DNA of 64,000 nt. It comes from Tubulanus polymorphus. Lineage: Eukaryota; Animalia; Nemertea. Made by a program: the position numbers and the translations under genes. Numbering within the stretch: position 1 is the first letter of the stretch; every line of letters starts with the position of its first letter. Shown piece by piece: positions 3,701-61,618 of this stretch. The stretch covers positions 3,906,001-3,970,000 of the forward strand of contig NC_134035.1 in the NCBI RefSeq assembly GCF_964204645.1. Direction: 5' to 3'. The notes under the pieces are model-generated. The model ran no database searches. It saw only the letters and a list, made by a program, of their open reading frames with translations, and was not told the DNA's origin.

Positions 3701-6604
3701 TGTGTTGAATAACAGGCATACCACTATAGTGTGTCTACACCGTGGTGCGGTGTATCGTTAGCTGCTATTATTTCAATATGGTGCTTCCATCTTTCAATAG
3801 AGATAAAAATTAATTACTACTTATGTCAATACACTGCAATGCGGTGTACTAGCAAAGTCCATCACCAATTTATACACCGCACTGCAGTGTAGAGGCGCTG
3901 AAAGGGTAAATTGCCGATACCAAACATTTGGGTTGAAATTAAGTTTTCACAGAACCGACTGATTAATTTTTTTTATTTCGTTTTACCCAGGACCCGCGTT
4001 ACTGCGGCGACGACGACGACGGAGGCGGCAGTAGCCCGTTGAAGCAGCATCCACCGCCCTTCGATCAACTGCTCGAACGCGAAAAATCGCACGACTACGT
4101 GAAAGTTTCCAGGGGTAAAACTTCGCAGAAAATTTACTTAAAAAAGGGGTTTAGATACAACACCTTGTTTGATTCAATTTGATGAACATTTTTGTTCAGT
4201 TCGTTGTTTATTTTTTTCGTTGTAGAGAAATCGTCGACGCAGTTCCATCGGCCGCGAGTTCCGTCGGCTACTGCCACCTATATTTCGACCCCGACGGCGC
4301 AGGTGGGCTCGGAGATCGGTGACCAGTTCAATGACAATAGAGGTGAACGTAACCATTTGGAAAACGCGAATCCCGGTACGAAATTTACAGTAAACATCAC
4401 CTCCGGTGAACTGGGAATGCCATGCAGGGTAGCCACGTACCTGGTAGCTGGGAAATTTAATAGTAAAGCTAAAAATCAGGGAAACATCAGGGAAGCGACG
4501 ATTAGATCGCGCGTAAAACATCAAACAGTTTCCGTCTATGTCTTACCTATTTGATTGTGTTAATTGATTAAATTCTCAGCAGATGAAGTCAAGGAAAACA
4601 ACGTGCATGTCTGGGTATAGTGAGGGGCAAAAGTCAAATAAAAGTGGCCACACTGTGGGAATGTTGGACAGGGTGGCCACCTACCTGAAGATCGGGGAAT
4701 AGTCAGGAACATTTGTTGAGATTTGTTAGATCACGTGACTGCGTTAATGGATTGGATTCTTAGCACATCGAGTCAGGGGAAAGAACGTGCCTGGAAAACT
4801 ATGTCCGGGGAAAAAGCAAACAAAATCAAAGTGGCCACGCTTAGTTAAGGATCGAAACAACAATGAATACAAATCAGAAAATAATGTCGTTTTGTCGCAG
4901 TTAGTCGACGTTGGTAGAACGTAGAATTCAATGACGGTTTATCGACGAGAGTGATTCGATTAAGCGCGTCGTGTAGCTCGATTCCTAATTAAATCAGTCT
5001 CGTTGATTATTTGCAGCTGGAAGCTACGGCTCCGACGCGGCGTCGCACAATGGTTCATCGATCAGACAACAGCAGCGCGGCGTTACGCCGAAAGAAAGCG
5101 CTCGTAAAAGCCGCGAAATAACGAGCACGATCGACAGCATTCAGAAACTGCGCGCGTCGGTCATTAGTTCGGCTAAACGCGCGAATCTGAGTCCGACTAC
5201 CGGGTACGTACGTGTTTCGCGAAGGTGGCGAGAAATCTTGTCAATTTTTCGATCGCGTCAGTCACATTCATCGGTTAATCGTTCTTACAGGGAGTGTATA
5301 GAGCAGATCGTAAAGATGACCGGCGACGAAGTGAACTCGATCACGGCTGAGATCGAAGACACAATCGAGGTATAACTACGAAATCCCTCATGCTCCAAGA
5401 CCGTGCGAATTATCCGAGTGACGTGTACAAATCCAACGATAATCTTAATTCTATCATCAGAAAAAAAGATGGTGACAAAATTATAATAAACAGTACGGTG
5501 TATTTTGAAAAATATGAGACGTATTTTATATTTTTGAAAATACAGTGTTTTGTTTTTAAGTAGGAATGTTTCATTACTGTTAGATTGATTATTTCTTCAC
5601 TACTTTTTTCTGAAGATGAAATTGAAAATGTCCTAAGGAATATTAGAATGATAGGGGCGAATCTAAGGTCTGATTCAGGGAGGGTTGTACCTTTAAGATA
5701 GGGCATATCATATCATCGAAAGGGCAAAGATAAACTCTTCGGAAGTACAGAGAACAAGCTTATGAATTTAAACTTTTTTAGTTTCAATGTTCTCAATCTC
5801 AGCTTTGAAAAAATCGAAATCAAGGCGAGTTCATTCATAATTTCTGTAAAATTTCAGGCCAAGTTGACATATTTAGAGGGGGGTGCGCACCCCCTGCCCT
5901 TTCCCCTTGAATCCACCCCAGATAAAAATTCAGTCATCATCTACACTAAAAATACATCGTTTTATTTGTCAGTTTTACATTTAATTTCTTCCTTTCCTTT
6001 TTTTTTAGAAAAAGAAACTAGATTCTCTGTCGAAAGGGGCAACGACGACGAAACAGACTGAGGCGCGATGGTCGAAATCCGAGGCTTACAACGATTCGAG
6101 CGACAAGTCGAAGCCGGTCGTCGCGAACGTGAAGCCCGGAATCCACAAAGAAACGCCGATTCATCTGAACCGCAATTCGCCGTTCGGCCAGCAGCACGCC
6201 GCGTCGCCGTCGTCGCCGTTTTCCAATTCCGACAACGACAACAACGGCAACAACAGCGACCGCGTGTTGTTCAGTCGAGCCGAGTCGGCGCGACGCGGCA
6301 AAGCGACGACCGCGACGCGTCTCCGCGAGGACCACACGACTCGTCGGTCGCGCGCCGTACGCAGCAACTCGGTCGGACCGTTCATCAACGAGCAGATCGA
6401 GCTGATCAAACTGGAAGAGGGGAGTCGCCGCGGCAGTCTGGGTAGTAACACGTATCGCGACGTTAGCAGCACGTCGTGGGATAATAGATCGGGAAACGTA
6501 TCAGAGGTAATGAGGTCACTCATTATTACTGTTATTATTATTATTATTATTACTGTTATTATTGTTATTATTATTATTATTGTTATTATTATTATTATTA
6601 TTAC

Positions 6605-6647
<43 letters not shown>

Positions 6648-9600
6648 GATACTCTCCTACTCCTCACACGCAATTCATACTGGTTTTTTCATGTATTGCG
6701 TCTTGCTTTCAAGTTTGAACGTTTTTTAATGTGTTGTGTCATTTTTTAATATACATTTTGCTGGATTTTTCTCGCATTTATACTCTTACGGAGCTGCCAA
6801 CTGTTCCTGATATTCCAGTAGATATAGTTAACACTTTTAGCTTCTCAGAAATACTGATTAGATAATTTCAAGTGTGCAGAAAATAAGAAAGAGTTGCTGA
6901 GGGTCTTACCCCCTTGATTACTGATTAATTTCAACAGAAATATGAAAGATGTTACTGAGGTTTTTATTGTTGATTACTGATTAATTTGACTGAAATATGA
7001 AAGGTGTTACTTAGGGTCTTGCCCCCCTTGATAACTGATCAATTTGAACTGAAATATGAAAGATGTTACTGAGGGTCTTACCCCCTCCCCCTTGATAACT
7101 GAATAATTTACGAAGAAATGTGAAAGGGTTACTGAGTGTCTTGTGTAGATATGTGAAACTAATGGTGTAAAGGGTCTTACCCCCATTGATTACTAATACT
7201 ACTATCCCCCTTGATTTTTACAGAAATGTAAAAGATGTTAGGTCCTAATCCCCCGAATACTCATTTACTTATGGGTCATTTTCTTTCGTATTTCGATGAA
7301 ATTTCCCTGAAACCATTTAAACTTGTTACTGGCAGCTCTGATTTACAAGATTACTCATTATCGATCTTCTGTCGTCGTTCATTGCTTTACGGTAAAAACC
7401 TTTCAATCTTTCCAATCGGTTTTTCCAATCGACTTTTCTCGTTTTATTTTCATCGTCATCAGGAGACCAACAACGTCGTTAGAACGGCGGAGGAGGCTAC
7501 CGATAGTGGCAAGCGTAGCGGCGCCGGCGCCGGCAACGAGGCCAAAGCGCGTGATAATAATGACGTTGTTAAACGAAATGTAAAACGGGTAGGCATGATG
7601 TCTATGGGTTTATAGTCGGTGTCACGCACGTTTACAATGATATGCAATCCGTTCCATTCGCTACACCAAGTCACAGCTAGTCGTAGACGAGTGGCTGTCT
7701 GCACTCAGTTGAATAATAAAATCCACAATCGAAGAACTGAACGCTATGAGCCATTTTCAAAGACTTTCGAAATGACATTCGAGTTGATACGTCCAAATCC
7801 TCTTACAGTTTTTTTTTTATTGTGGCTTTTATTCTTCAAAAGCCACGACTAGTTCTGCTCAGTTGAGTTAGTTCATCCACGCGCAGTATTTTCAGTCACT
7901 TTTCCGTAACTCGTACACAAATTTTTATTCGACCTATTTTTCGTAGGAACACGTAACGTAATGCTTTTAGTTGTTGCTAGTTTAGAATTGAATTAAATCG
8001 TAGCCAAACGTCTCGGGATTCTAACCTATCGATCAATTTCTTCTATTGAAGAACCTGGTAAAATGTCTTCTGCACGATAAAACACTTTGTGAGTTCATTT
8101 TCAATTGCAACTGTCTGGCGTGAAGTCCTGGACACATTTGAATCCTTGATGATCAGTTTTTGAAAGTGCGCTGATAAATTGTCTAATGTCTGGTGTTTGA
8201 AGTACATTTTCAATCAAAAATGTCTTGGGTGAAGCGTGCAGGATCAGTTGTTGATTGAGTGCTGATGAAACGTCTAATGTCTGGTGTTTCTAATTCATTT
8301 TCAATCAAAATGTCTCGGGTAAAGTTTTGAACGCATGAAATGACAATAATTGTCTGGCGTTTGAAGTTCATTTTCGATGAAATATGTCTCGGATGAAGTT
8401 CTGAACACATGTGAACTGTGGACGACCAGTTTTTGAAAGTGTGCCGATAAAATGACGAATGTCTGGTGCTTGTAGTTCATTTCCAAACAAAAATATCTCC
8501 GGTGAAGGAAGTCCTGAACACATAATATGTGAAAGACTCATCGAAAAAGCAATTTATTTACATCAGCACCACTGTCCTTGCTAGCACCTGTGCAAACCCA
8601 GACTACTAATTGAATAATTTCATACATGTTTTTCGTTAATCCGCATTCATCAGATTGTATATGTATTTATTTTGCAGGCTTTGCCTCCACCTTCAGGTGG
8701 CTGTCTAGCGCCTAATTCTGTATGTAGATCTCCCAGTGTGAGGTATTCTCGTTCAATTGCGTTCTGATTTTGTTTTCGTTTTTTTCCGCGTTCATCCTCT
8801 CGTTCCTTTTCAATTCACCGAACCGTTTATCGTCGTTACGCGCTAGTTTTTTTCTCGTTTCATCCGAATTAATTTCCGCGGGTTTTTTTTCGCATCCAAC
8901 CACAATACCTCTCTCTTTCTCTCTCAACACAATCTTAAACCGATTGCTATTGCAATTATCCGATGCCTTTGGCGAACTGTTTGAACTGAAAATGTCATAA
9001 ATTCGCAATGAACAATTTTGTTATTTTGATTTACATTTTTTTACTCGGTGCGTTGATGAACATTAGCTCACTATTCATTTGTTTGTTACGCAGACAAAGC
9101 ACACAAAAAGCGTCATTACCAGGAGCTGCTGTTTTCTCATGGCTTCATAAACTAGAGCGTAGAGAGAGGGAGAGAGAGATTGTCTACGAGGGTGGATCAT
9201 AAATGGCGGCTGCAGCCAAAATTTTTAGAGTAATTTGCGCTTTCTTTTGATGATCAAAACAAATCAGTGGAATATTTGATACTTGTGATAACACTTGCCA
9301 GCTTCTGATTACTAGATCAAACACCAACCCCAGAATATTTATTTAGTGGAACCTCATTTCAACGACCTCGGCATAGAGCGATTTATCAGTAGATCACAAA
9401 CCAGAAATTTCATCCCAGATTGGAAAAAGAAATTCCAATAATTTCATACTTGATATAGCAACCTTGCGGTTCGCACGGATCTTAAGGTTTCCTATGAAGT
9501 TCGTTGTGACGAGGTTCCGTCGTAGTTGCTCTTCTTTGGCGAGTTGTTTGCCACTGGACCATTGAGCTGCGGCTGTAGCAGATATCACTTCTTTCAATGT

Positions 9601-14638: not shown

Positions 14639-17600
14639 TCATACGTAACTGATCGAACCCGCCGAGTCGTCGGGCGGCAGTTCGTCTATTCTATTCGCTT
14701 CCAGGTCGCTAACGTTGCGTCTCGTTCGCGCCGCCCTAATCTGTATTTCTCGATTGGTGGCTCGGCGATCGGCGTTGCGCTGATCGTTTTTCGTCACGCG
14801 GACGCCGTCTGCGGCCGACCGGCGATTGCCGCCGCCGCCGTGTTGACACAAGCAGGACGAATACGACGGACGAAAGTCGACGACGACCAGGTAGCATACG
14901 GGATACCCGCAGCCGAGCGTCACGAACAAGGTCACGTTCGACAAGACGACGATGCTCGACGATATCGGCAGCCCGCCGCCCGCGCAAATATTGATAATCC
15001 AGTAATTCAGATAGACTACGTAGATGACGCTGCAGGCTACCAGCGCGGAAATAGCCATGCGGTACTCGAAAGAGCTGGCGCTGAGTTGTAGCGTTACGGA
15101 TTCCAGGTGCCGATAGGCGTTGACGATGCAGTATATTAACACGGCGAACGGCGAGAAAACTGTCGTAATTAAAACTAATCCGAGGAACGAACCGATGTGT
15201 TGGTTGACGTGAGAGAAATCCAAGCTACAGTGCATAGCGCCTGAAAATATGATCGAATCTGAATTATATTTAGTGCAACGACTTCTATACTGGCGTATTA
15301 TCAACCGTTCGCTAGATATACAGGGGCTGGTATACGAACGGGTTCGCGCTAGCCCATCGCAACTTTAACGTGCCCTCTCGAAAAGCAACGGCAATTTCTT
15401 TCGAGGCAAATTTTCATTTAGAATTCACGTGTCCCTCTCGAGCCTCACTCCCTCTTTCGGTCGTATCAAAATGCACCAGAAGACTCCGCTTTGACTTCGC
15501 GGGTACTTGCCCTTTTTAACAGCCCTTTTCATTTTGTTCGTGCTCTTGGCAAATTCTGCCCCTCGACTCACCAGAACTGGACAATATATCATTATACCTT
15601 CCCATCCCAGAATTGGAGTTGCAACAACTTCCCCTCATTCAAGTGTCACAGTTTCGTATTCTTCGACTCTGGATTTGAAGAAATTACATGCCTTTTGGGA
15701 TATGACAAGTTCAGGTCCTATTACAAAAATGGTCAACAAAGGATAGCTGAGGGTGTACGGTTTGACTAGCCCCTCGGTGCGGAGTGACCTAATATTGCCT
15801 TTTCAGACGTCAAAGTGCCCTTTTGTGGAATGTGACAAGTTTGTCCAAATATTGACCCCCTATATACTAACTAACCTTGATACGATAATTCCTTCTCGAA
15901 GTAAACGGCGAATTTCATCACGTCGATCGTCGTTTGGAACCTGACTGCGGCGGTCACGTTCGAACCCCGCGCGCCGAGGAAAATACCGAAAGATCGTTGT
16001 AGATTGTTCGACACGGTCGCGTTGTAGTATTCCTCGGCGCTGACGTGGTCCTCAAATCGCAGGGTGACGCACACTTCCGCGCGTTGGACGACGCTGCGAC
16101 GAACGTGAACAGCGCGCACGATTCGAAAATAATCCATCAGCAAAGCTTTTAATTCCATCGTCTCGGTTTGCGTCGGCGGCTCGCACGGCGTCGATTCGTT
16201 TCTCCCGGGGAGGCACTCGGACGTATTTCGTTGCAAAGAAATGCACAAATCTGTCGAGCCTGGAACAAAGAGATATTATCGGGTATTATAGATCTCGTCG
16301 GAGTCTATCGCGCGTAAAACAAAAATGGAAGGAAAAAGTGGCCAAGTAAAAAGACTGATTTCTAAGAAAGCATCTTGTCAGCGGTGGATATCGAATGCTT
16401 GTCAGCATTCTCTTTTTGTCAACAGCGCTTCATTTTATATACCGGTTAATGGTACTTGACAAGACGGCGCGCTGTCAGAGGCCGTCGTAGTCGGGAAATC
16501 CTGTCGGATTAGGTATAGATTGGCAAAACCGAAAAAAAAAGAAAGAGAGATGGAGCGAAGGAGCGAAGGAATAGAATGCATTAGAAAGGGAAAAAATGAA
16601 GGAGAGAGTTTTTGAGACGTATTCGTCCTGTTGGAAATGTACACAATCGAATTGTAGAAATATTAACAAGCTATCGTGGATGATGAAATAAGCAAGGAGT
16701 ATTTAGATTATTATCATTTTGTGGTTCCGTGGCGTTGAGGTGGTAACTTCGGCAGTCACCTGCACAATCCGAAACGCTTACGACGCGGCTAATGATATCT
16801 CTAATTTCAAGAACCTACCTTTGAAATAACCGAATTCGCCCCAGGCGTAGATAGGACTTAGAAAGATCAGCACCAGTAGGACGTAGATTCCGACGACTAT
16901 CAATTTGGTGTTCGCGACGGAAAATGTCAGATTGTACTCGGTCGGTTTAATAAGCTTTGTCATTCTAAACAGAAACAGACAGAGAAATAGAGAGTAAAGG
17001 CACGTGCGTATATATAGCTACATGTAGAAACTTTTCTTTTCAAACACTGTTGGAATCGTAGCGCGAAAAACTTTTTGAAACCGCTTGATCATCGATTATT
17101 TGTATCCGTGGTGCCGTGAAGCCATTAGCGTTTGAGGATATTGTTTCAAAGCTATTGCTACGATGCTATTATATAGAACCACTTATCGACTGCGATTGTG
17201 GTGCGCAAATTAATCTTCAGCTAGCTTCAGTAGCTTCCGTTGTCAGCTATCATGAATTTGATACTATATGAAATAAATTTTACCAAATGAAAGCCCATAC
17301 ACGAAAACCTGAAATTAGTGTAATAGCGGGCTACTTAGGACCTTGGTTTAGGAGCTACATACTTTTTAAAGGATTTCTATCTATGAAATCAAATTAGGTA
17401 TTGGTTGCCTTGGTATCCGTTTCCATGGAAATTGCACCAGTTTCCATGGAACGGATATCGATTCCCCAAAGCTTTCGAATGATACCAAATTTGTCCATAT
17501 GGTATCCCTGTTGAACCGAACTTAATTTCTAGAGGACTTTTTTTGTACTTTGGTGCCCGTCTATATGCGTTGAAAGCGAAAAGGTTATATCTCCGGTGAT

Positions 17601-20600
17601 ATCTCCGGTCAAAGTTCTCTTCAATCATTGGAAAGCATTGGCAGCGTTATAAAGAATGGTATTTTCATCGAATTTCAGTTCGATCGAGCGAATTTGTTTG
17701 CAGCGTTATAACCGACTTGGTAGTAAATCTATAAAGTAATATCTCTACTTTTTTTACTGACCCATAACACCAGGTTTACGCGGCTCCTTTACAAATCTCG
17801 TTATGTTTCGATGTTTCGTTGGAATAATACGATATCAAGAATGATGACACCGCTTTGAGCAGGACGTTTTTTTTAAGCAAATCTTACGAAGCAAACCCGG
17901 AAATATAAGAAATATTAATTTATTTTTCACTTAAAGATTATGAACGATTCAAATGCCGAGTTAACGACGTAAGTGAGGGTGCAGTCACAGAGCCCACTGG
18001 CTGTAGCAACTTTGGACCAAGCCAAGCGGTGCCCGAACCCAAGGGACCAATATTCGTTTCTTTAAAGAAAAGCTTACCTTTCGAGGACCGTGACGGTGGA
18101 AAGCCAGACGGTGCCGGAAATCATGACGTAGAAAATCACCCCGTACAACTGACAGCCTATATACGTCATCACCCATTTACCTAGAAATCGATTTGAGAAA
18201 GAAATTCATTTCCTTAAATTGTTAATTTTCGCAGCGAATTTTGAGCGTATATTTTTTTCATTTTAGAAGAAAATTAAATCGAAGAAATTTGCTGTTATCT
18301 TTTTCAACGTCTTCCGGAATGCGTGCATGAATGAAACGCTGTGGCGAGTGAGGCTTATCGATGTTCGATGCTAATGTTCGTCGTGTGACAGTTTCAACGA
18401 AAAGGTGGTGTTTTTCTTAATAATTTGAACGATGAATGCTCATTCTCGGTAGCAATTGAAAAGCTGTTTCTTTGCTGGTTTTCATCAGCAGCAAATGGCT
18501 GCTGACGTGCGTGGAAGCCACGGCGCGTTATCGGCTGATGCAGTCTGCGCTTAGATCGTCTGACTCGTCTACACGACGTCGCTACAGATCGATGAGAGAT
18601 AATTTGAATAAACGAACACATCAGAGACGCTCGTAATACGATTTCTTTCTCTATTTCGCGCCGGTCATCTCGTCCCCTCGGCCCTCTCGAATACACGCTG
18701 AATTCTCCGTTTAATTTATTCTGTCTCGACATAACATCAGGTAGCCGGCGGGAGACCTGGTTTGTAGACACCTCCTACGCGGAATGAATAGGAATGAATA
18801 ATGGACGAAATTGACCGTGCATGGCGATAAATAATGGTTCGGTATAAGATTTCAGATTTTATGCTGCCGCCGCAGCATTTCGTGAGCTGTTGCGTTTTAT
18901 GAAGCGTGCAGTAGGTTATTGTCAATTAGGCTGCCTCTAATATAGGCAGTTTTTATGCATTTCTCATATACCTTATTATTTTCTTTTTTCCAAAACGATT
19001 GATTTATGTTCTACACGGCGGCGGGGCATTAGGTACTTAGCGATATCAAACCGACTGACCCGATCCCGCGCTCCGGAGTCCGTGGTGACGAAGCCGATAA
19101 GCTGGACTAGACCGACCAGACTTGTAGCTGTCAGTTTTCGGTATACGGGGTATATGATTAACGACCTTGTTTATCGGATCATATTGTAAACTCGAGTTAT
19201 TCATCCCTATACACGGTATACATGTATAAATCAAATATCGGTAGGTTCGTTTACCGATAAACTGCAGGGGAAGATATTAATTGTGACGACAGGTGGTCAA
19301 ACATCATAACACCTAAACGAACGAACCAATATTCGCTCGAAGAAAGACGCGTCAATCAGCTACCGACTTTTTTTTCTTAATCTCGAAATATAGGAAATTG
19401 TCCCTCCATTGATTTGGTGTCCCTTACGAACCCACCAGTGATACCACTACTGGGAACGAAACAGGAGGTTCGCTGTCGATATCGGAAGTAAAAATATGGT
19501 TGGATCGGGCGGCCGAATTTACCGAATTGTTTGTATAAATTGAAAGAGTATACGTAATATTGGAAATTTCGATTTCGGTTCGTGTTTACAATCTTCCACC
19601 CAGCCTGACCCGGCAAGCGACTGATTGGGTTAAGTTTTGTTGGTTGCCTAATTCCATGCATCGAGATTTGGAGGTGAAACTCCTCTATGTTGTTTGTTGA
19701 CTAGATAAGAAGCCACTCGCGTATGTCGTCACGTCTTCTGCAGACGACACCAATTTCACCCCGGCCCGAGTTGATTAAAGCGGCGTACAGCGGATTTACT
19801 TATCGCAGACGAGATCGACTCTGATCGGATTGTTATTGATAATCGATCGATATTCTATGCTGCCGACGTCAAACATAGACGACAAGAACAGATAAGTTCA
19901 CGGGGAGCCGTCTCGTACCCACGTATAGAGTTCACTAAGTGAACTCTAGATTGCAATTCACGTGAAATGAATAGATGCATGCTTATGAGATCAGCATCGT
20001 TAACGCAAGGAGCTGCAGATTTTTAAAGAGCGGTGGCTGATTTTTAGAGGGTTTGATGTAGAAATGACAGTGGCAACCGCTCTACATAAGTGTCACCCAA
20101 TTTGACTTGATATTAGATTTTTAGATCATTATAAATCATCCCATTTACGCGACAGCGCCACAACGCTTTCGAGGACATTAAGATGGGAAAGAATCCTTGT
20201 CCCGGCTATACGGGATGAGACTTTAAGTCCAAAGTGTTCGTAAATCTTGTCTTAAGTTGTTAGATTGGCTTGAGAACAAAGATGGCCTTAGACTGGTCTT
20301 GAGTAAAAGCCGTGACTATGGAGCCTGGCGGTTTGACGATGTTTTTGAGTTCCCGAACGGTCGATGCTTTTTCGATTTGTCGATTTCAAAGCAGCCTCAA
20401 AAATAGAATTGAATCTTTGCATTTGACAAATTATTCGAAAGCAAATCGTCTATCTGAAACATAATTTGAAATCATTCGAAGGCAAATCGATCTGTCGTAT
20501 AGGAAATTCCTCTTGAGAAGAATTACCCTTTTTTCTTGTGTGGAAGAAACGTCGTTTGCCAACGAATACTCTTTTATAGTTAACCAAGGTGAAAGTGTGG

Positions 20601-26600: not shown

Positions 26601-29600
26601 TCATTAGCAGTTATAGCCACGACAGATCTCTCGCTTGTACGTGTTCTCCTCGCTCGAATGCGGAGAAAGCGAACTTCTCTGTGAAGAGACGCCTTGAACG
26701 CATGAACTCCCGATCTTTCCGATCTTCACTCGCTTGTAATGAATAATATAGTTATCATCCGCACTGGATAAATTACTTACATCAGCTAAATGCCCTGATC
26801 GTATACCGTACAATTGTTATCGTGACGAAAACACTGAATGCAACCATTCGACCCGGTGAATATTGCTAGAAAGCGGTGCTACATCTGATAACTTAACATC
26901 TTGAATGTATCATACTCCGGCTATTACTTATATCATATTGTTCATTACTTATATCATACTGTTCATTACTTATATCATATTTTTCATTACTTATATCATA
27001 TTGTTCATTACTTATATCATACCGTTCATTACTTATATCATATTGTTCATTACTTATATCATATTGTTCATTACTTATATCATATTGTTCATTACTTATA
27101 TCATATTGTTCATTCATTAATTTCGTAAAAATTCATACCATATCAAAAATACATTTTTTCATGTATTTTTACATAATGATGCCTTGGATCATGAATTGAG
27201 ACCGGGGTCGTGCCTCCTTCCTATACCACCCCCACCTTCAACCGATGACTCGGGTTAAAGATGAGACAGTCATTGAAATTTGATTACATTTTCTTTGTGA
27301 AGCTCTCTAAGGAAATGTCACGTTCCGTTTGGAACGAAGCCGCACTTTAATGTTAGATTCTATCTTGTTTTCGAAGTTGTTTTTGCGACCTATTATCCGA
27401 TGTTCAAGGTTGTTCTTCTATTTTTGCAAGGCCGTTGGCGCTCTATCTGAGATCCACGATGACCTTTAGATGTACAGTCGTGACCTAATATCTTAAAACT
27501 GTTCACAAGACTCTGGTCGTTAGATTGACTCCAGGAATGACATGTTCTTAGACCGGTCTTAAATTCAGGTCAGACTGGCGCAAGTCCTCTGATCTACAAA
27601 ACACCTTTGATAGACTAAGGGTATTCCTGGATCACGCCTACCATACTAACAATGAGGAACCATGGTAAAAACAGAATCTTCGAAATGTTCAAAGGATTAT
27701 TTTGCTCATCTATGAAAACCCGTAGCCCACGTCGATAACCAAGCCCCGTTTCAGGCGATAGCTACGGGATTTCCTTTCAAAGATATAGGAAAGACTCCCC
27801 TCCATTTTTTGGATAGTTCGATGCACAATGAAATTATTTGTACGGATCAACGTCTAACGCACAGAAATACACCTGAAAACCAAATGCATTTTCGCAGATG
27901 TCCATAAAGAGTGTCTGAGCACGCCATAATTATTGCAGTTACATTATGTCTTACGGCGCAGAGCTTTCTAGCGTGTTATCGCGTCTCGCTGGTTCTTGTT
28001 GATTGGAGAAAAGAAGCAATTTATAATTCTCTATATGGTGATTGGGCTCTGTCGCAAGCAGGTCTAATTCCACCGCTTCACTCTAGACATTGAACAATCG
28101 AATTCATACCAACAGCCTTGTAGTTTCTGGCTTACCCGCGGCAATGATCTTGGTCGTCACCTGCGTATTGATATACACAGCGAGCAAGACATCAAAATGC
28201 GCCGCATGCGATCCTTTATTTTCCGGGTTTATGCTCGATTTGCCGATCAAACAAGGGCTGAGTGATGGTCAACGCAGTCGGTTGCGTGGGAACCGAACCG
28301 AAATTCGGCAGAATATACATCAAACAGACCTAGTCGGAGTCGACTGGCTATTTGCGAACTTAAGTCACACGGAGGCGATTTGGCACCCGTGTGAACAGAG
28401 TTGTTCCGTGCAAAATTTGGCAAGAGCCAAATTTGGCCCGGACCAAAAATTTTCGTGTGATCGTGGCTTAAGTGAAACCGAATGTCAGTAGTCAGAAATG
28501 TAGTCCGGAAATAGTCATCTGTACGGAATTCAGCACGTTCGCACCATAGTTCGGACCAATATTTCCAAGATGGCCGACACTGTGAAATGCCTTACGACCG
28601 AACTGCGTTCGGTTATTAGTTCCGATTACTAGTCGACTAGCTACGAAAACGAAGTTCCCTCTTGAACTAGCTGAACGGTCGCCACCACGTTCCAAAAGAG
28701 CGACTTGCTTTCACGAAAGCTCGCCAGCGCAATTGATATCATGCGATTGGATTTTTTAAGAAGGATTTAAAACGAAGCTTTCATATTCTATTCGATTCAG
28801 TAATCGGATTATACGCAATCCCGTACAATATCAGGCCGATCCTGAGCTATCTATCTCTCTCCGTCGTCTCTATGTCATTCTCGCTCGAATCCCTCGGGTG
28901 TCGCGTCTGTTCGGTGTTTGATTGCAAATCTCGGCATTCGTCCGATGGGATGAACGTGTGTCGGCGGCCAGCATGTGTCTCGCCGTGCGAGGATAAAGGT
29001 TGTAATCAGCGGCAGTATCTCCCACGGCGATACGGATAACTACGTAACTCGATCGTTAGGTGCGAGAACGACACAAATACTGATTTCGCCTTTTTTTCTA
29101 ATATTAACTTATTCATACGGCGAGCTTTCGATTAAAAAGCATTGCGGCGGCCACACGGAAAGTACAGCCATTAAAGGAGCCAAGATTAGACATTTTGTCG
29201 TCATTGTTGTCAGAATGACCGCGAGCGTGAGCGAAAAGTATCCTGTTTCGAAGGTCACCTCAAACGATACCCGAGGCCAGGGCTGAATTGCACCAAGGGC
29301 AGCTACCTGGTCACGGCAGCGACTATGGAACTGAACTCCGAGGTCAGAGATCTTAATACTGGTCGTAAGTTGTCAGATTGGCCATAGAACTAAGATGATC
29401 TGCCATGACTTCGGAATGGGCCCCGTCTTAAATCGTAAAATAGTATTATGTCGTTAGATTGGCTATAGAATTAAGATAGTCTTAGACTGGGTCTTAAGTC
29501 TAACCCATGACTATGGAACCAATTCCTGAGGTCTTAGATGTTTAGACTTGTCTTATAAGTCGTTAGATTAGAGACACACGTTGGTCTTAGACTGGTCTCG

Positions 29601-30698
29601 AAATGTAAGCCGTGACTAGCCCCAGTGACTAGTCCTAGGCCTAATGAGATGGATTGTTCACTGTTAATCAAAAATATCGGTCGAAACGAAAGTAACGAAA
29701 ATTAGCAGTTATTGTTTTGTAGTCGCGGTTAGCTCATAGCCACAGGTAACAACCACAAAAGGTTCTCATTAACGGTTAGTTTGTACATGTAGATTGGCCA
29801 CAGTTGATCGCCGAAGGTTCCTCTATTAGCGGTTAGCCTGGTAGATTAGCCACCGAAAACAACCACAAAAGGTTGCTATAAACTTCAGGGTCATATACAA
29901 ACTAGACGTGCAACTGATATTCAAATTTCTAGCTAGCTGCATCAACGGTTGCAATAAGCTAATTATTAGATGGAACGATGCTAGGGCGAAATACAAGGAT
30001 GAAAATATAGAAATACCGAGTCCGAAATGTTTCTTTAAACAGGGTTTCTGTAAGCTAGTAGTTTATTTTCAACATTTTCGATTATATATGATTTTTATAC
30101 CCGAATGTTTTTATTATAGAAATTTTAGGGTTCAATAAAGTTGTGTTTTATTGTATTTTATTGTATTGTATTTCCTAAAGTTTGCTCTATTTTAGATTTG
30201 TTTAGTTCTGTTTTTACGTCTAGTTTGTATCAACACTTTTCATTATACACAAGTCTCTGGATTGGAATGTATATTTCTCAACTTCTGCTGTGCAGTAACT
30301 GTGCGGTAGTCCTGAGGATGAGTTTCCAGTTGCAGTCGAAACGTTGGAATAAACTACAGCCCGAGAAAGCATTCCGGGTTCGTTTTTCTTTAAGCTTCGC
30401 AAGGTTTTTTACCTTTCTCTCCTCGCAAATAGATATTTCACCTACCTGTCAGTGTCGATATGGCGTAAATGCAACCGTTTCCTACTCCGTTCACCAGACC
30501 CGTTACGGCGGTACATTTAACCAGCCAGTGCAGGCCTTTTCCGCCACCGAATTCATCGACTGTTAGCTTTTTCAAGAAGCAAACGTTGACGATCAACGAC
30601 ACCAAAACCGCAAAAATATATCCGGCGGCGGTAACGAAAGTGGACACCGGCGGCGGCGTTTTGAAATCCATTTCGGTTGAATTCGACTCGAAGACCAT
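14639..30698 (-). CDS. Class A (rhodopsin-family) 7TM GPCR, opsin-like but without the retinal Lys, 495 aa. Exons 30698-30446, 18180-18078, 16964-16819, 16259-15876, 15240-14639
   Basis: All introns are GT-AG with matching phases (1,2,1,1); 1488 nt in total. Motifs: N-terminal NST sequon, TM1 ...LIVN, ECL1/TM3 KWVMTYIGCQLYG, ER(M) at the DRY position, TM4/ECL2 SPIYAWGEFG...HCSLDF, TM7 GYPVCY (NPxxY-like), tail SCLC. Confidence 0.85.
15876..16259 (-). CDS. Symmetric phase-1/1 exon (128 codons) encoding an extracellular SEA/ferredoxin-like module in GPCR ECL2
   Basis: Acceptor TTGTTCCAG, donor G|GTTAGT, open frame, four N-glycosylation sequons (NTS, NES, NAT, NVT) and four Cys. The fold call is inferred from the hydrophobicity pattern only. 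Confidence 0.7.
20975..21284 (-). mobile_element. tRNA-derived SINE, near full-length, in GPCR intron 1
   Basis: Reverse strand: A/B-box head (GGCGAGT...GTTCGAACCCC), then CAAGACACTTATCCTCATTG...CCCAGGAGTAAATTGGGTACCTGG, resembling Deu/Nin-type SINE cores; homologous to 936-1380. Confidence 0.65.
26923..27113. repeat. 21-bp minisatellite ATTACTTATATCATATTGTTC, ~9 copies
   Basis: Head-to-tail units with no spacers. Confidence 0.95.
29320..29620. repeat. Dispersed repeat with internal ~45-bp units TTAGATTGGCTATAGAACTAAGATGGTCTTAGACTGGTCTTAAG; also ~20215-20325, ~27480-27580, ~43245-43290, ~47925-48150
   Basis: The same motif recurs at five loci. Confidence 0.7.
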
Positions 30699-34949: not shown

Positions 34950-37513
34950 ATGTTAAGATCAGTAACAGAAGAAAATCTACGGCGCCTTCCGAACCATTTC
35001 CAATACGTGGACAACGAGCGTTCGTGTTTACAATTTCAGCTGATACCAGACACTGATACTGCGCACGGATACCTTGATTACCGGCTCGAAGCGCTACATT
35101 GCGATTCGGACAAAGTCTACGGCGAAAGTGAAACAAATAACAATCTAAATGATTTTTTCGTTCGAGCCGCTGGAACTCTGAGGATATTTGTCGAGTATCA
35201 ACTCAGCTCGTCGAATACAACTACCGACGTGGAAAAAACTCTGCAAGGCTTCCAAAGTCAACGATACAAATCGCTATCCGGTTTGGAAAGTGTTGTGGCA
35301 CTGACAGACTGCGCGTACGTTTGTTTCAGACATAACCGAGTCTCCGAGGCGACAGAGTTTCACGAAAAAGCGAAGCGACTGTACGATGAAAATGCGCTTG
35401 CTAAAATATCAGCGTGGGGTGAGATAGCGTATTCGCATCGACGACTAGGACCCAGGCACATACACAGAGCTAAACTCATGTTTTCGCACGCGCTCGATTA
35501 CATAGATGATCACGTCGATGACCTGACGCCGCGAGATGCGGTGGAACTTCTGAAGGCCATTTTTCAGATGGAGTTCTGTAAGATGATCCACAGGCGCTTG
35601 CACTCGTCGCTGCTGATGGAATGTCCTGAAGAGTTCGACGTTTATTCCGACGTTTGCGACACCAACGTTAAAAAAGCGGCCGCGATGATTCAAAATCTAC
35701 TCGACAGAAATGTCCACCCGATTCTAACCGGTCGTGCTTGGGCGCACATCATTGAAATAACCATTCGTTATAAAGATGCCCAAATCGCTCTGGAACGGTT
35801 GAATCCGACACCGTTTAGATTAGAAGAATTTGAAATATTACCACGAAAATGTCTGACCATTCACGCATCTCGGGAATGGCTCTACAACGAGTATCGTTTG
35901 TCGAAAGACAAGAAAACGTTAACGATTTTGGGTCGTCTGCTAAAATACGATAATCAAATTGATAGGGCAATCGAAATATTTGAACGCGCACTTGAATTTG
36001 GAAGGGAATCGTCGTGTTATCATCATTTGAGCATCATATACAGAAATAGAGCTTTCGACGACTTCGAACTACATTCGCAAACCGATAGATTGGCGCTGTC
36101 TACAGAATGTCCTCCTCCGCTGGAAGTCGACTGTAGCGATCGAATAAAGTATCTGACGGTTCCACCGATAAACGTTAAGGGTAACTTACGAGAAACCAGC
36201 GATAAATATCGACGGATTATTCGTGTACCAGGTTGGTATGTTCATTTGTCTTTAAACGTTTAATACTATCACGGTATATATCTATTTTGTCTTAATTGCT
36301 TTCAGATGATGAAAACATGAAGCGAGCTTTGCATTACATCGAACAAGCTCATGAAATAGACGTCAACGCGGCCACATTTCTGAAAGAAAAAGCACACATT
36401 TTGTCGTGTCTTTCCCAAGATCTTGAAAACGATTTCGACAAAATCTATGATCTTCTGGACAAGGCTCTAAAGGAAAATCGCTTTCGACCTAATTGCGATA
36501 GGGGTCAAGTGTATGAGTTGATGGCTTTGCTTTGTAGAGACACAACAAAACGTCACAATGATTTCCCCACGTTTTATTACAAAGCCGTGAAGAATATGGG
36601 CGAAATAGGCATGCTTCCACCCGTGGCATTTCCAGATCTGAGTGACCTGCTTTACAAGGCGGCAGAGAAGTCAGACAACCCGTCCGAAGCTTTGCGCTTC
36701 TATAAGGAGTTGGTCGATTTGTACGACGCGACTGGTCAGATGCACGAAGCCGTGGCCGGATTCCTGGTTTTAGCCTTAGTACAAACTGCGGTGAAAAGCG
36801 GCGAGGAGAAACTGATTTTGGGACGACTCGTGACGACCTACGTTCAAATGGACGATTTTGAAAGGGCTGGGCACTGTCTGAATCAACTGATCGAAAACTG
36901 CGACGGGTTACGCAATAGCGACATAACCGCCGAGCTTTACTGGAAAGTTCGGAAAAACAACGGGCAGTTTAAGTTGGTTATTGAGGAGGTTTATCCCGAC
37001 GCGGCGGAAACTCCCGTCTTGTTCGTCGTGTCTGCGAAGGACAGCAAACAAGAGATCGCGCAGAATGTCAGTGACTCGATCAAGCAACTCGGCTTCAAAA
37101 ACCTGATGAATCCGCAGATTGACGGGTTACCCGGTCAACCGAATATCGGTCAGTTCGGAGAACTGATTGAACGGTCGAAGGTGATAGTGATTTTGTTCAC
37201 GGAAGAAATGTTCGTAGACAACGAAATAGGTTTAGTCATTCGAGAATGCGCAGCGATGAAAAGACGCAGTCAAGTGATCACTGTTTTCACCCCGGGCATC
37301 CAGGAAAAATCCACCGAACTCGACCACGACGCCGAGGACATTTTCATGATTTGTCGGCATCTTTCCAACGCGCAAGTTCCGCGCGACGCGGAGAAAAACG
37401 ATGAATTCGAGGAAAGATTTGTGGAGGCGATTCTTGAGCGGAATCGGTCGCTGAAGTACGCCATTTCTGAAAACGCGAGCGAAGCCGAGGCGATGCGTGA
37501 GAATACACGCTAA
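34950..37513 (+). CDS. IFIT/TTC22-like tetratricopeptide-repeat protein with C-terminal TIR domain, 829 aa. Exons 34950-36231 and 36306-37513
   Basis: Two long ORFs joined by a 74-nt phase-1 GT-AG intron; in-frame stop upstream of the ATG. LRRLPNHFQY and WGEIAYSHRRLGPRHIHRAKLMFSHAL resemble IFIT/TTC22. TPR helices such as LGRLLKYDNQIDRAIEIFERALE. TIR-like LFVVSA...DGLPGQPNIGQFGELIERSKVIVILFT. Confidence 0.85.
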
Positions 37514-39700: not shown

Positions 39701-42700
39701 ATGGCGACAAAAATCAAATGCTTATCGTTAACTCGTATGGTAGTCATAAACGCGATTGTTTTCGGCGTCGAACTTTGCGCCAGTGCCGGATTTACTTATA
39801 TACCGCCGATGCTGCTGAAATCGGGGATTCCGAGTCGATACATGAGCCTGGTGCTCGGTCTAGGACCGTTGATCTGCGTGTTGACAGTGCCCGTTATCGG
39901 GCAGCTCAGCGACAACTGCACGAGCGCGTACGGCCGAAGACGCCCGTTTATTTTCGTACTATCTCTAGTCGTGTTAGCGTCGTTATTTCTAATACCTTTC
40001 GGCGGTGAAATATCGAACTATTTCGGTGGCGGAGCCGCTAATACCGAGGTATCCGTGATTTTGTTGACGGTCAGTGTTGTGCTTTTCGATTTCGGTACCC
40101 AAGCCTGTTTGACGCCTTGCGAGGCGCTTCTCGGAGACATGAGCTCGGCCGATACGCACAGTCGGATATTCGTCGTGTACTCGTTCATGTGCAGCGTCGG
40201 GGGAGTTTTCGGGTATCTGGTCAGCGCCGTCGACTGGAGCCGTTTTTCGATCGGGAATTTCGTCGGCGGTCAGGAGAAATGTACGTTCTTCGTGTTGATA
40301 TTCTGTTTCGTCGCATCGATGGCGGCCACGCTGGTCGGCACGCCCGAACAGCGACACCTTCTGATCAGTAAATCTAAAACAACGAACGGCGCGACGAAAC
40401 GATCGAATCCTTCGTACGTCGAGCGAGAAATCCGACCGAAAAATGAGAATGGCGTAGTTATTTTCGAGGCGAATCCGCCGAATCGTTTAAGCCATATTCG
40501 TTTGCACATAAACGATACAGCGATAACCAGGGCGTCGAAAACGTGTCCCTGTTTGCTGCGCAATTTCTCAAACATCCCGGCAGTTGTGCGGCGCCTTTCG
40601 TTAGCGAATTTCTTCAGTTGGTCGGCCATCTTGTGTTTTACGATATTCTACTCGGACTACGTCGGTCAAGCCATCTACAAAGGGCGCCCGACTGACAACG
40701 TCGTCGACAACGACAGCAGCAGCAGCGGCGGCGGCGGACAGTACGACGAAGGCGTCCGCATCTCGAGTTTGGGATTGTTTTTTCATTCGGTCGTTTCGGC
40801 CGCATTTTCCGCCGTGATCGAATTGTTTTTCCGGCGTTTCGGCGCCAAAGGCACCTATCTGTTCGGGATGTTCAGTTTTACGTTGTCTATGCTAGTCATC
40901 GCCGTTTCGGATGATATAGTCGTTGTGAACATTTTAGCCTCGTTCACCGGTATCGCGTACGCCGTGACGACTACGATACCGTGCACTCTGATCACTCTAT
41001 ACCACGACGATAAAAAGGTAGCTTTATGACCAATGGGATACCGGCAAGCGAGGATTCGGCGATAATCCGCCAGGATCGCTAGTGGCACCGGGTTACCGCG
41101 CTTCCATTTCCTTCTGCCGTTCTAATTAAATTCGAATCTATTTTTCTCACTACTCAATCAATTTTCCATGAAATCCATTCGCTGAATGAGAAAGCGAATC
41201 TTATATCCGTCCGGTAACTTCTAAATTTTCGGATTTGGCGGCTTAGAAATCAAGTTCGGATTTCATCGAAAATGAACCGATTTTCACTACTAATAACGAT
41301 TACGATTATGATTTTATTTACACTCCAACCATTTCCATGGTATATGGAGGAAAACTATTATACATGTATATACAATAACCCAGTTTTTTGTTGCGCCATC
41401 TGGTGAGTGCCGGTATCCCGCTCAAATGACGTTCAAAAGCAATGAGAATACGATGAACATTTTCTTGTCCATTAACAATCATCGTAAAATAACGGACTAA
41501 TTCTATATACAACGGGGCTTTATTACAACGAGTTACTGGGCACCAGAAATTAGTTTTTCGATGTATAAAATCCCACGCTATACTAATGGTAAATTCTGAG
41601 AAGTTTCATCGAGCTAGAACAGAAACATGTTAATTACAGTTGATGAATGAAGTACTGTAGAAACTTCATCCATGTGATATGTATTTCCAAGCGTGTACAT
41701 GCCGCCATTTGGTCGTTTGTCACATGTTGAGATACGTTTCGGCTAATTACTAAATGCGACATCTGCCATGCATGAATATATCGACTGAGATTCCATGTGT
41801 GCTTGCCAGATTGTGCGAAGAAATATTCAAAATCGCGAAAAATTTCATTAGATTAACGAAACGATTTTTGTCAGCTTCACGTGAAAATGATTCTCAGAAT
41901 TACGATACTAATTTGAAGGAAAAACAACTCACGGGCTTCGATGATTTTGTTTGCACGTTGAAACTTGACCGTTTCAAGTGGAGTCTTACTATAATCCCAC
42001 ATGTTGAACTGTGGAGTCTAACTATACTCCCAAAGGGCTTGAGTAGAAATATTTTACGTTCAAAGTACGGGGCCCAGTTTTATATATAGACTGGTTGTAA
42101 TCGAAATTAGAAAAATGGATTTTGGCGGTATAGTTGAGTCGAAAATTATAATCTCAGCAACCGCGGTCCTTTCCAATGTGATAAAGGGTTTACTTTAACC
42201 CGTTGGCTAACTCAATTCATTTTCACTGGTTTAAAAGTTAATACCAGCCTATAAAACCGGATTGGTTCGATTTATTTTGGCTGATTTTATTTCGCAATAG
42301 TAGTCAATTTTCATAATGTAAATGACCTATTAGGTTTTAAATGTAAATTCGGAAATAAATCTAAATGTAACAGCGTAATGATACTCATTTTTGATACTCA
42401 TTTTTAGAGTTTAGATGATGAATTATTCCAATATATGCGACCTTGAATTTCAATACTTCGAGATGAAAAGATTTGATTTTGATTTTGCTCGTGGTAGTTT
42501 ACCGGGTGTAGGGGCCATTTGCACAGTCATTGCGCTTTATACATTACCAGTCTAAGAACGCCTTAGTTCTTCTACTGCCAATCAAACAACTTGAGAGTCT
42601 CAGTATAGGAGATCATTTTTAGGCTTGCCTCGACTATGGAAACGGGCCTAGGGTCCGGTGAAAAAAATCTGCGTTAAGCTTTGACTCAAGAGTTAACTCA

Positions 42701-58922: not shown

Positions 58923-61067
58923 CTTTTAAATATTTTAGATTAAATAAATAAATTCTGGTTTTTAAATTCTTTTAATCTGTAAATAGTGGGATTTTATCTT
59001 ATGGTATCTGTTTATTTCTTTCAATTTCTTTGTCTTGTGGTGTGTATCTTTTTACTTTTGTATTCGAACTGATACGATGAATGAATAATCGAAGTCGTGA
59101 TTTAAAGAGTTGACTCTGTGAATCAGGAGCCCGGGTCGTAGAATAGGCCCTATACAAAACTATTTAGACGGTTACAGTTTTGGCTAAATGCAGTACAATA
59201 TGCATCTCAGTCAAACCGAATAAGAATTTATGGCCCAAAACTAAACTAAAACGGAAGAGTGACGCAATGACTGTAAACACGCTTTCAGTTCTCGTTTGTT
59301 TGAGTGGGTGTCGTGATTTCAAGACGTCATATATTCGACTCAGATTCTGTGGCTAATTTGCGAGAAAGGGCCGCGGGCGTTAGCGACTCTCATCCAACGC
59401 GTTGTGATAATACAGCTTCGTTTTTCTTCCAACGCGCGCGCACTCGAACGGATTCCCGGCCGGTTTTCGACGACGACGACGACGACGACGAATCGAGTCG
59501 TCGAATCGAAATCTGAAAAATACTCGTTTCGCAGACGCGATCTACGGTTAATTTATCCACTTGGATCCGATCGCTACCATTAGTGGTTCGACACTCGACG
59601 CCAATCAACCCGTTGCTCGAGTATTATAAAATGACAATATGTCAGCCACTACACACAGCGCTCTCTCTCCTCGTCACTCAGTGTAACATGGCTAATATCG
59701 AAATATAACCACGTGCCACAAGTCAGCGCTTACTCGCTCTTGAAGTCTTATTATTCGTAAATCCCGGTTTATTTATACTGATATCGTTTTTTGACGTTTG
59801 TTCGCGTGTGGTGTAATTAGTTATTCGGAGAAAAAAAACGAGTGATACACCGGCAATGCCGTAAGAGAATTTACGTATTATCCGCGCCACAAGCGATCGG
59901 CAACCTGAATTCACTCCCTTAAAATACAACGAATTAACACTTAAACCACCATCTTTCTCTTACATGTACAGGTTTCCTTTAATGCGTCGAGGACTTCACA
60001 TTAATGAATTAGAAATTAACTAACAATTTTCTAAGCGAGCTTTTCAAACGTGGTCGGTCAGACTTCACTCATCGATCTTGAAGTTATACCGCAACGTAGA
60101 TCGGTATCTATACTTGCCAGTTATTTGGTAGTGTCGTACATTAAAAAAAAATCCATTCTAAATCTTAAATGAGGTCCTGCATTTTTTTTTACAAGCGGCA
60201 GCTGGGGCGGTCCAGGGTTAACGAAAGTATAGGGCTGTCAACTTAAGAAATCTAGGGCCTCTTTCTTCCCAAGCTATGCGGCGATTTCGTTGTTCGCATA
60301 GACTACGACTTTTTATAACCGCTTCAATTGTAAAAAAAAACAGCAAATTGCCACTATACAAAAATTGTGATATTTTTCCATTTTTCAAGGTTAAATTCGA
60401 CTTAACTTCCGAAATCATTCTGTCCGAAATGTTTTGGGACGGGTTTCTTAAGGGACTGCGAAACTCTAGGGTAGGGGTGCCCGGACCCCTACGGACAACC
60501 CCTGTATCCGCCGCTGGGCGGACTTAAACGATTTTGAAAAAAACCATCGTTATTTTCTGTCGAGTTGTCAGACGTTTTCGTCAATTCTTATTGGCTGGAC
60601 GCATTGATCGACAGACGGAATCAAAAGTTGAAATTCGCCCTAAACATTCCACATCTGGCAAGAATAATTGACTACTTTTCTTCATCAATTAATCGGTTAG
60701 TCGTATATTTTGAGATTTACTCATTCGTTCAGAGGTTTTCCGGGGATAGCTGTAGATTGATGATACCCTGCATGAGTATACCGTCTCGGAGCTCGCGGCG
60801 TATAACTCATCATAACCCGCTTCGAAAACAGAGCCGTGACATTTTTACAGCGAACGCGCGTTCTCCTTCTTTCGCGAACACGTTTGATTTTAATATCGGC
60901 CCCGAAATTGTTGCCATTCGTCACAAACCTGTTGTGGAATTCACGGCAAACTGCGCGAATTTTCTAGCGCTGATTAAAGTCAAATATTGGACTAAACTCT
61001 TGAATATCTTTCGACGTATTTAGCATTTTAATGGCGCGTTTTATTCGTCACCATCGCCTACGTTGCA

Positions 61068-61104
61068 GCTGCTGCTGCTGCTGGTTGTGGTGGTGGTGCG
61101 GCGC

Positions 61105-61138
<34 letters not shown>

Positions 61139-61316
61139 GCTATTGCTGCTGGTAGTGGTGGTGGTGGTGGTGGTGGTGGTGGTGGTGGTGGTGGTGCTGC
61201 TGCTGCTGCTGCTGCTGCTGATGCTACTGCCGCTGGTGAGGTAGTGGTGCTGTTGCTACTGTGGCTGTCACTGCTGCCGCTGCTGGTGCGGTGGCGGTGG
61301 TGGTTGTAGTGGCGGT

Positions 61317-61383
<67 letters not shown>

Positions 61384-61618
61384 GTGAGGCGGTGCTGCTG
61401 CTGCTACTGTGGCTGTCACTGCTGCTGGTGCATTAATGTTTTGCAATGAGCATTCTTTTTGGGTGCCCTTTTAATTATATAGGTCCTATTTTTAGGGTGC
61501 AGCTCTCCCTGAATCAGATCTTAGATCAGCTCCTGCTATTGTGGCTGCCACTGCTGCTACTGCCGCTGCTGCCGCTGCTGCCGCTGCTGCCGCTGCTGCC
61601 GCTGCTGGTGCTGGTGCT
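61068..61618. repeat. Compound (GCT)n/(GGT)n/(GCCGCTGCT)n trinucleotide repeat field
   Basis: Seen directly; two blocks, 61068-61431 and ~61528-61618. Confidence 0.92.

Follow-up and report, generated by a model that had tools for sequence, protein, structure and literature searches.

A gene on the minus strand of a 64,000-nucleotide stretch of the genome of the palaeonemertean ribbon worm Tubulanus polymorphus (contig NC_134035.1, positions 3,906,001 to 3,970,000; this whole stretch is termed the window, and coordinates below are those of the window) is predicted to encode a very divergent class A G protein-coupled receptor (GPCR), whose second extracellular loop (ECL2) would be interrupted by the product of a single exon of 128 codons. 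There is an even chance that this exon is constitutively included and encodes a glycosylated module that caps the ligand pocket as a binding or gating surface, displacing the loop plug of the type known from GPR52.

Gene model and position of the insert

Five minus-strand exons were found to join in frame, with AG/GT ends throughout. Exon 1 (30446..30698), comprising 84 codons and one further nucleotide and ending in phase 1, is predicted from the DNA to encode the N-terminus and transmembrane segments (TM) 1 and 2, while exon 2 (18078..18180, phase 1 to 2) carries the Trp of extracellular loop 1, Cys3.25 and TM3 through the E-R of a degenerate DRY motif (ERM). Exon 3 (16819..16964, phase 2 to 1) contains intracellular loop 2, TM4 and the first half of ECL2, with a WG..GY motif as in GPR52 and GPR21. 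Exon 4 (15876..16259) is the 128-codon insert in ECL2, which contains four Cys as well as four sequons and lacks both a hydrophobic segment and a known homologue, and exon 5 (14639..15240) carries the ECL2 Cys, TM5 to TM7, the helix 8 region, the C-terminal tail and the stop codon. The insert is bounded by two phase 1 introns, namely intron 3 (16260..16818, 559 nt), which is single-copy DNA, and intron 4 (15241..15875, 635 nt), which holds two short dispersed repeats outside exon 4. Exons were searched individually, with the joined translation being used for lengths, hydropathy and motif positions. The predicted product is 495 amino acids with exon 4 and 367 amino acids without it, reproducing the two receptor models of an earlier interpretation made from the DNA letters (the sequence-only reading). 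Seven hydrophobic segments are present in the joined product, to which the insert contributes none.

The insert comes after the WG..GY motif that follows TM4, and upstream of the conserved ECL2 Cys. When exon 3 is joined directly to exon 5, the spacing between Trp and Cys is 12 residues, the same as in the GPR161 of T. polymorphus, and the aromatic pattern is intact to either side of the junction; with the insert this spacing is 140 residues. Likewise, the distance from position 4.50 to P5.50 is 52 amino acids without the insert and 180 with it, the corresponding distance among 50 GPCRs of the same genome having a median of 51 and a maximum of 73. The claim of the sequence-only reading that the two exons form a normal ECL2 when joined was borne out by these loop lengths. 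As the loop is of normal length without the insert, it would appear that a normal loop was split by the gain of an exon, rather than having been lengthened gradually.

Exon 4 as a coding exon

Exon 4 is 384 nt in length, has phase 1 at both ends and is open in the frame that links exon 3 to exon 5. Its acceptor (...ttccag) has pyrimidines at ten of 12 positions and its donor (AG/GTTAGT) agrees with the consensus at five of six, which puts both splice sites on a par with those of the remaining exons. In 93 kb of non-coding DNA, no open segment that had phase 1-1, at least 300 nt and comparable splice sites was found. With a model of synonymous codon choice, for which 21,710 codons from the T. 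polymorphus genome served as training data, exon 4 scored 0.117 bits per codon (versus 0.09-0.15 in the host exons), exceeding all 700 windows of intron 1 and all 5000 base shuffles. CpG richness supplies part of this signal, the next frame scoring 0.076, with the coding frame being the highest. This frame is also the sole open one among six on both strands. GC content by codon position (0.53/0.42/0.66) resembles that of exon 5, and the third position exceeds the second by 0.24 (P=5e-5). When the three gaps were scanned, nothing but exon 4 was both coding-like and frame-preserving, and no partner exons for it were found in the flanking introns. At the DNA level there is thus strong evidence that exon 4 is a genuine coding exon, as was claimed for an intact phase-1/phase-1 exon at 15876-16259 on the grounds of its sequence.

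Exon 4 was found to be single copy in the genome (268 Mb, 77 contigs) and not a repeat. A transposon origin was rejected, as the repeats sit in intron 4, outside the exon, and scans for tandem repeats and against Rfam gave no match bearing on exon 4. The intron 4 repeats (~15685-15850 and ~15480-15570) represent two families, with dozens of 72-86% copies across chromosomes, while intron 1 holds a 21-bp tandem repeat of nine copies that are 95% alike (26923-27114).

An alternative is that exon 4 lies outside the receptor mRNA, whether as a frame that is open by chance, as an exon in decay or as part of another transcript. This would fit with the exon being known from DNA alone, with no annotation or homologue seen, but it is made very improbable by the combination of coding statistics, splice sites, matching phase on both sides and an excess of sequons (described below), as well as by the single copy number, the closed state of the other frames and the lack of partner exons. 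Inclusion of exon 4 in the mRNA is, on these features of the DNA, very likely.

Exact look-ups found nothing, and no database protein containing exon 4, nor any of 133-421 amino acids containing exon 5, was found, the records of this genome being perhaps only partly covered; hence neither isoform was met as an annotated product. Exon 4 could also be an alternatively spliced cassette acting as a switch, in line with the skippable lid or sensor suggested by the sequence-only reading. The 367-amino acid form would then have an ECL2 that is normal and possibly self-activating, while in the 495-amino acid form the insert would disable or gate the loop. Its phase symmetry would permit skipping, and the skipped form would have the canonical loop described above, both in its spacings (12 and 52 residues) and in its aromatic pattern. 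However, any exon gained in a phase 1 intron must be symmetric, so that this property is not evidence for skipping; the splice sites, which match the other exons in strength, are equally consistent with constitutive inclusion; and the 367-amino acid protein was not found in the database. The switch is thus considered unlikely, and inclusion of exon 4 by default the most likely mode. A second, weaker in-frame acceptor was identified at 16250 on the minus strand, 9 nt inside exon 4, from which a 375-nt exon would be possible.

Identity of the host receptor

The host had been described as an opsin-like GPCR, of which the assignment to class A was upheld, while the likeness to opsins was not, as TM7 is without Lys and exon 3 matches only GPR52 and GPR21 in the PDB. 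Exon 5 was called a class A GPCR by language-model features (Atlas, score 0.95). The exons map in order onto a profile built from 50 GPCRs of this genome, giving the class A order of seven TM segments. Exons 3 and 5 beat 500 of 500 shuffles on this profile, at the TM4 and TM5-7 positions respectively, with exon 1 giving a weak class A match that was equalled by three of 500 shuffles. Cys3.25 (GCQ, exon 2), the ECL2 Cys (HCS, at the start of exon 5) and P5.50 are retained, with micro-switches found to be altered elsewhere (G at 2.50, ERM for DRY, Y at 4.50, YLNY for CWxP and YPVCY for NPxxY). Exon-by-exon search gave no match to Pfam 7tm_1, and no relatives of exon 5 were found in searches; a search with a wider length window, in which exon 5 was aligned to one full-length receptor of the same genome, was swamped by allatostatin receptors and was uninformative. 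The receptor is thus very divergent, and on the reading favoured here it is an orphan, fast-evolving class A GPCR.

Going by the rhodopsin pattern, the host would share with opsins, pseudopsins and placopsins CQxYG in TM3 and a WG-aromatic...CSxD spacing in ECL2. The PxxGW motif, proposed by the sequence-only reading as a mark of opsin type, proved to be present also in amine-type receptors and GPR161 of T. polymorphus. Retinal binding is defined by the TM7 lysine (PMC10097855); this residue (the equivalent of Lys296) is absent from the host, which, unlike opsins, would form no retinal Schiff base and is therefore not an opsin in the working sense. No opsins were among the PDB matches of any exon. 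Pseudopsins are also without Lys296 and occur in nemerteans (PMC10097855), and the host is possibly a degenerate opsin or pseudopsin, although pseudopsins keep the G-protein motifs that are degenerate here.

Comparison of exon 3 with all PDB chains returned nine rows, each of them GPR52 or GPR21 (best E 0.043). When exon 3 was compared with 30 receptors from its own genome, the best match (E 8e-5) was L053:988-2529 (minus strand), an intronless gene of 514 amino acids that is the GPR161 orthologue of T. polymorphus (E 1e-50). No GPR52 orthologue was found in the T. polymorphus genome by DNA pattern scan. GPR21, 52, 61, 101 and 161 group as one clade, together with the placozoan 'placopsin' (bioRxiv 10.1101/2025.04.18.649542), and it is from this neighbourhood that the host probably derives, going by exon 3. 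Whether its ancestry is GPR52-like in particular is evenly balanced, with kinship to GPR52 and GPR21 being a lead from 43 residues, short of orthology.

GPR52 and GPR21 are self-activating class A orphans. Both have the first half of ECL2 tucked into the pocket, where it serves as a built-in agonist; in GPR21 the agonist-like motif consists of residues 170-178, with Cys181 bonded to Cys3.25 (PMC9839698). The likeness to GPR52 matters because exon 4 interrupts the stretch that matches this half of the loop. The host resembles these receptors in its TM4-ECL2 pattern (IFL.P...WG..GY) and in keeping Cys3.25 and the ECL2 Cys, but differs in having 128 residues inserted within the stretch matching the agonist-like motif, which is interrupted when exon 4 is included. 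Moreover, it has Glu at the position of GPR21 Lys170, its loop is one residue shorter, its exons 1, 2 and 5 are without match, and most class A micro-switches are lost.

Sequence and predicted fold of the insert

Four sequons (insert residues 11, 20, 79 and 100) and four Cys (insert residues 5, 15, 25 and 63) were identified in the insert, in agreement with the count previously given. The sequons take four of its six Asn residues (P=0.007), as expected of an extracellular segment, and the insert is probably N-glycosylated. No relatives of the insert were found in Pfam, NCBIfam, PDB sequences, Atlas features, 1.84 billion representatives, its own genome or metagenome contigs. A likeness to RRM/BRAP2 was rejected, there being no Pfam match and the locus being omitted by a genome-wide search for the BRAP2 family; an apparent internal repeat was found to be due to chance (P=0.49).

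The sequence of the insert has alternating hydrophobic strands and an amphipathic helix. In a first structure model, of low confidence, these are arranged as strand-helix-strand-strand, and nearly all of its top fold matches are ferredoxin-like. The ferredoxin-like fold has its two ends side by side, suiting insertion in a loop, and its strands 1 and 3 are neighbours; in the model, these strands carry Cys5 and Cys63. It is rather likely that the insert is a folded module, with a ferredoxin-like fold being a tentative assignment.

Alternatively, exon 4 may be included but encode a long, largely flexible glycosylated loop without an autonomous fold, acting as a shield or trafficking element. The low confidence and disagreement of the two insert models, as well as the lack of homologues, would fit with such a loop, for which the complement receptor C3aR (C3aR1) is a precedent as a class A receptor whose ECL2 is unusually long. 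In C3aR the long part of the loop comes after the conserved Cys and has no exon of its own, whereas the extra sequence of the host is one exon, lies before that Cys and is structured-looking, with no sequence relation seen between the two. The ECL2 of C3aR has 172 amino acids and is flexible, being unresolved in structures beyond the first 16 loop residues (bioRxiv 10.1101/2023.01.18.524551). Against a flexible loop stand the pattern of strands and helix in the insert and its four Cys, and orphan folded domains are often modelled poorly from a single sequence; we regard this alternative as less likely still than a splicing switch.

The sequence-only reading had likened the insert to the SEA domains (PF01390; MUC1, MUC16, EpCAM/TROP2, the Notch HD and some adhesion GPCR N-termini), which was not supported. 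Acquisition through exon shuffling of a SEA or SEA-like domain that is now highly diverged, a possibility compatible with either mode of splicing, would be consistent with the extracellular location, the glycosylation, the approximate size and the strand-helix-strand-strand start of the model. SEA-like domains retain a ferredoxin fold despite low sequence identity (PMC6586460). TROP2 and MUC16 were listed by Foldseek, at ranks 17-46 with E above 1, but no SEA chain remained among the top 50 fold matches on re-alignment. Furthermore, the insert gave no PF01390 match and scored -0.5 bits on a first-half profile built from ten SEA domains of the T. polymorphus genome, on which left-out members scored 8-35 bits (a second-half profile was too weak to serve as a test). 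The RSVV sequence, taken to recall the autoproteolytic GSVV site that cleaved SEA members have at the start of strand 3, has no Gly before Ser and falls in the loop ahead of predicted strand 3. At nine of ten SEA loci inspected the GSV half is in a separate downstream frame, whereas the insert is one exon; SEA domains are situated in N-terminal or juxtamembrane stalks, unlike the insert in its loop between two helices. A SEA origin is thus improbable. Among the SEA loci of the genome, L020-L022 (contig C9, 2.52-2.53 Mb) hold near-identical tandem SEA domains alternating with Ser/Thr/Gly-rich stretches, in a mucin-like gene.

Proposed role of the insert

The arrangement that we favour is one in which a fast-evolving orphan class A GPCR acquired, within the first half of its ECL2, an exon for 128 residues that encodes an N-glycosylated, disulfide-containing alpha/beta module that is possibly ferredoxin-like. 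This module would sit outside the membrane, atop the helix bundle, with the TM3-ECL2 disulfide preserved, since the loop Cys is found shortly downstream of the insert. It would replace the short loop segment that folds into the pocket of GPR21 and GPR52 as a built-in agonist, and would cap the pocket, offering a binding or gating surface to a large extracellular partner. We infer all of these functional steps, and a cap or sensor role is plausible but less likely than not. Weighing against this arrangement are that it concerns a single gene in one species, known from DNA alone and with no relatives found, and that the fold is unreliable, both insert models being of low confidence and mutually discordant. 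A bolder version, in which a folded module is spliced in and out of a GPR52-like agonist loop, with one form constitutively active and the other under the control of a protein ligand, a protease or force acting on the module, is highly unlikely.

To our knowledge, extra domains of class A receptors are nearly always N-terminal. No description of a folded domain inside a class A ECL2 was found in the literature searched, which excluded most subscription journals; the long ECL2 of C3aR, which is flexible, comes closest. Should the insert prove to be expressed and folded, this would show that the pocket-closing loop is able to accommodate an entire domain ahead of the conserved disulfide, a natural example to follow in the design of receptor-based sensors. 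In that case the insert might also represent a new domain family.

Other features of the window

On the plus strand, two long adjacent frames of 437 and 405 amino acids (34950-37513) gave weak TPR matches and a weak TIR match near their end, all below Pfam cut-offs; these probably form one TPR-TIR gene with a short intron. Frames over trinucleotide runs were found at 6068-6749 (plus strand, poly-Ile) and 61048-61446 (minus strand, poly-Gln/Ala/Pro/His), the latter of which possibly belongs to a real gene as a low-complexity exon. The main exon of an SLC45A3-like MFS transporter was identified at 39701-41029 on the plus strand (frame 39701-41026), being 100% identical to a T. polymorphus protein and providing a synteny anchor.
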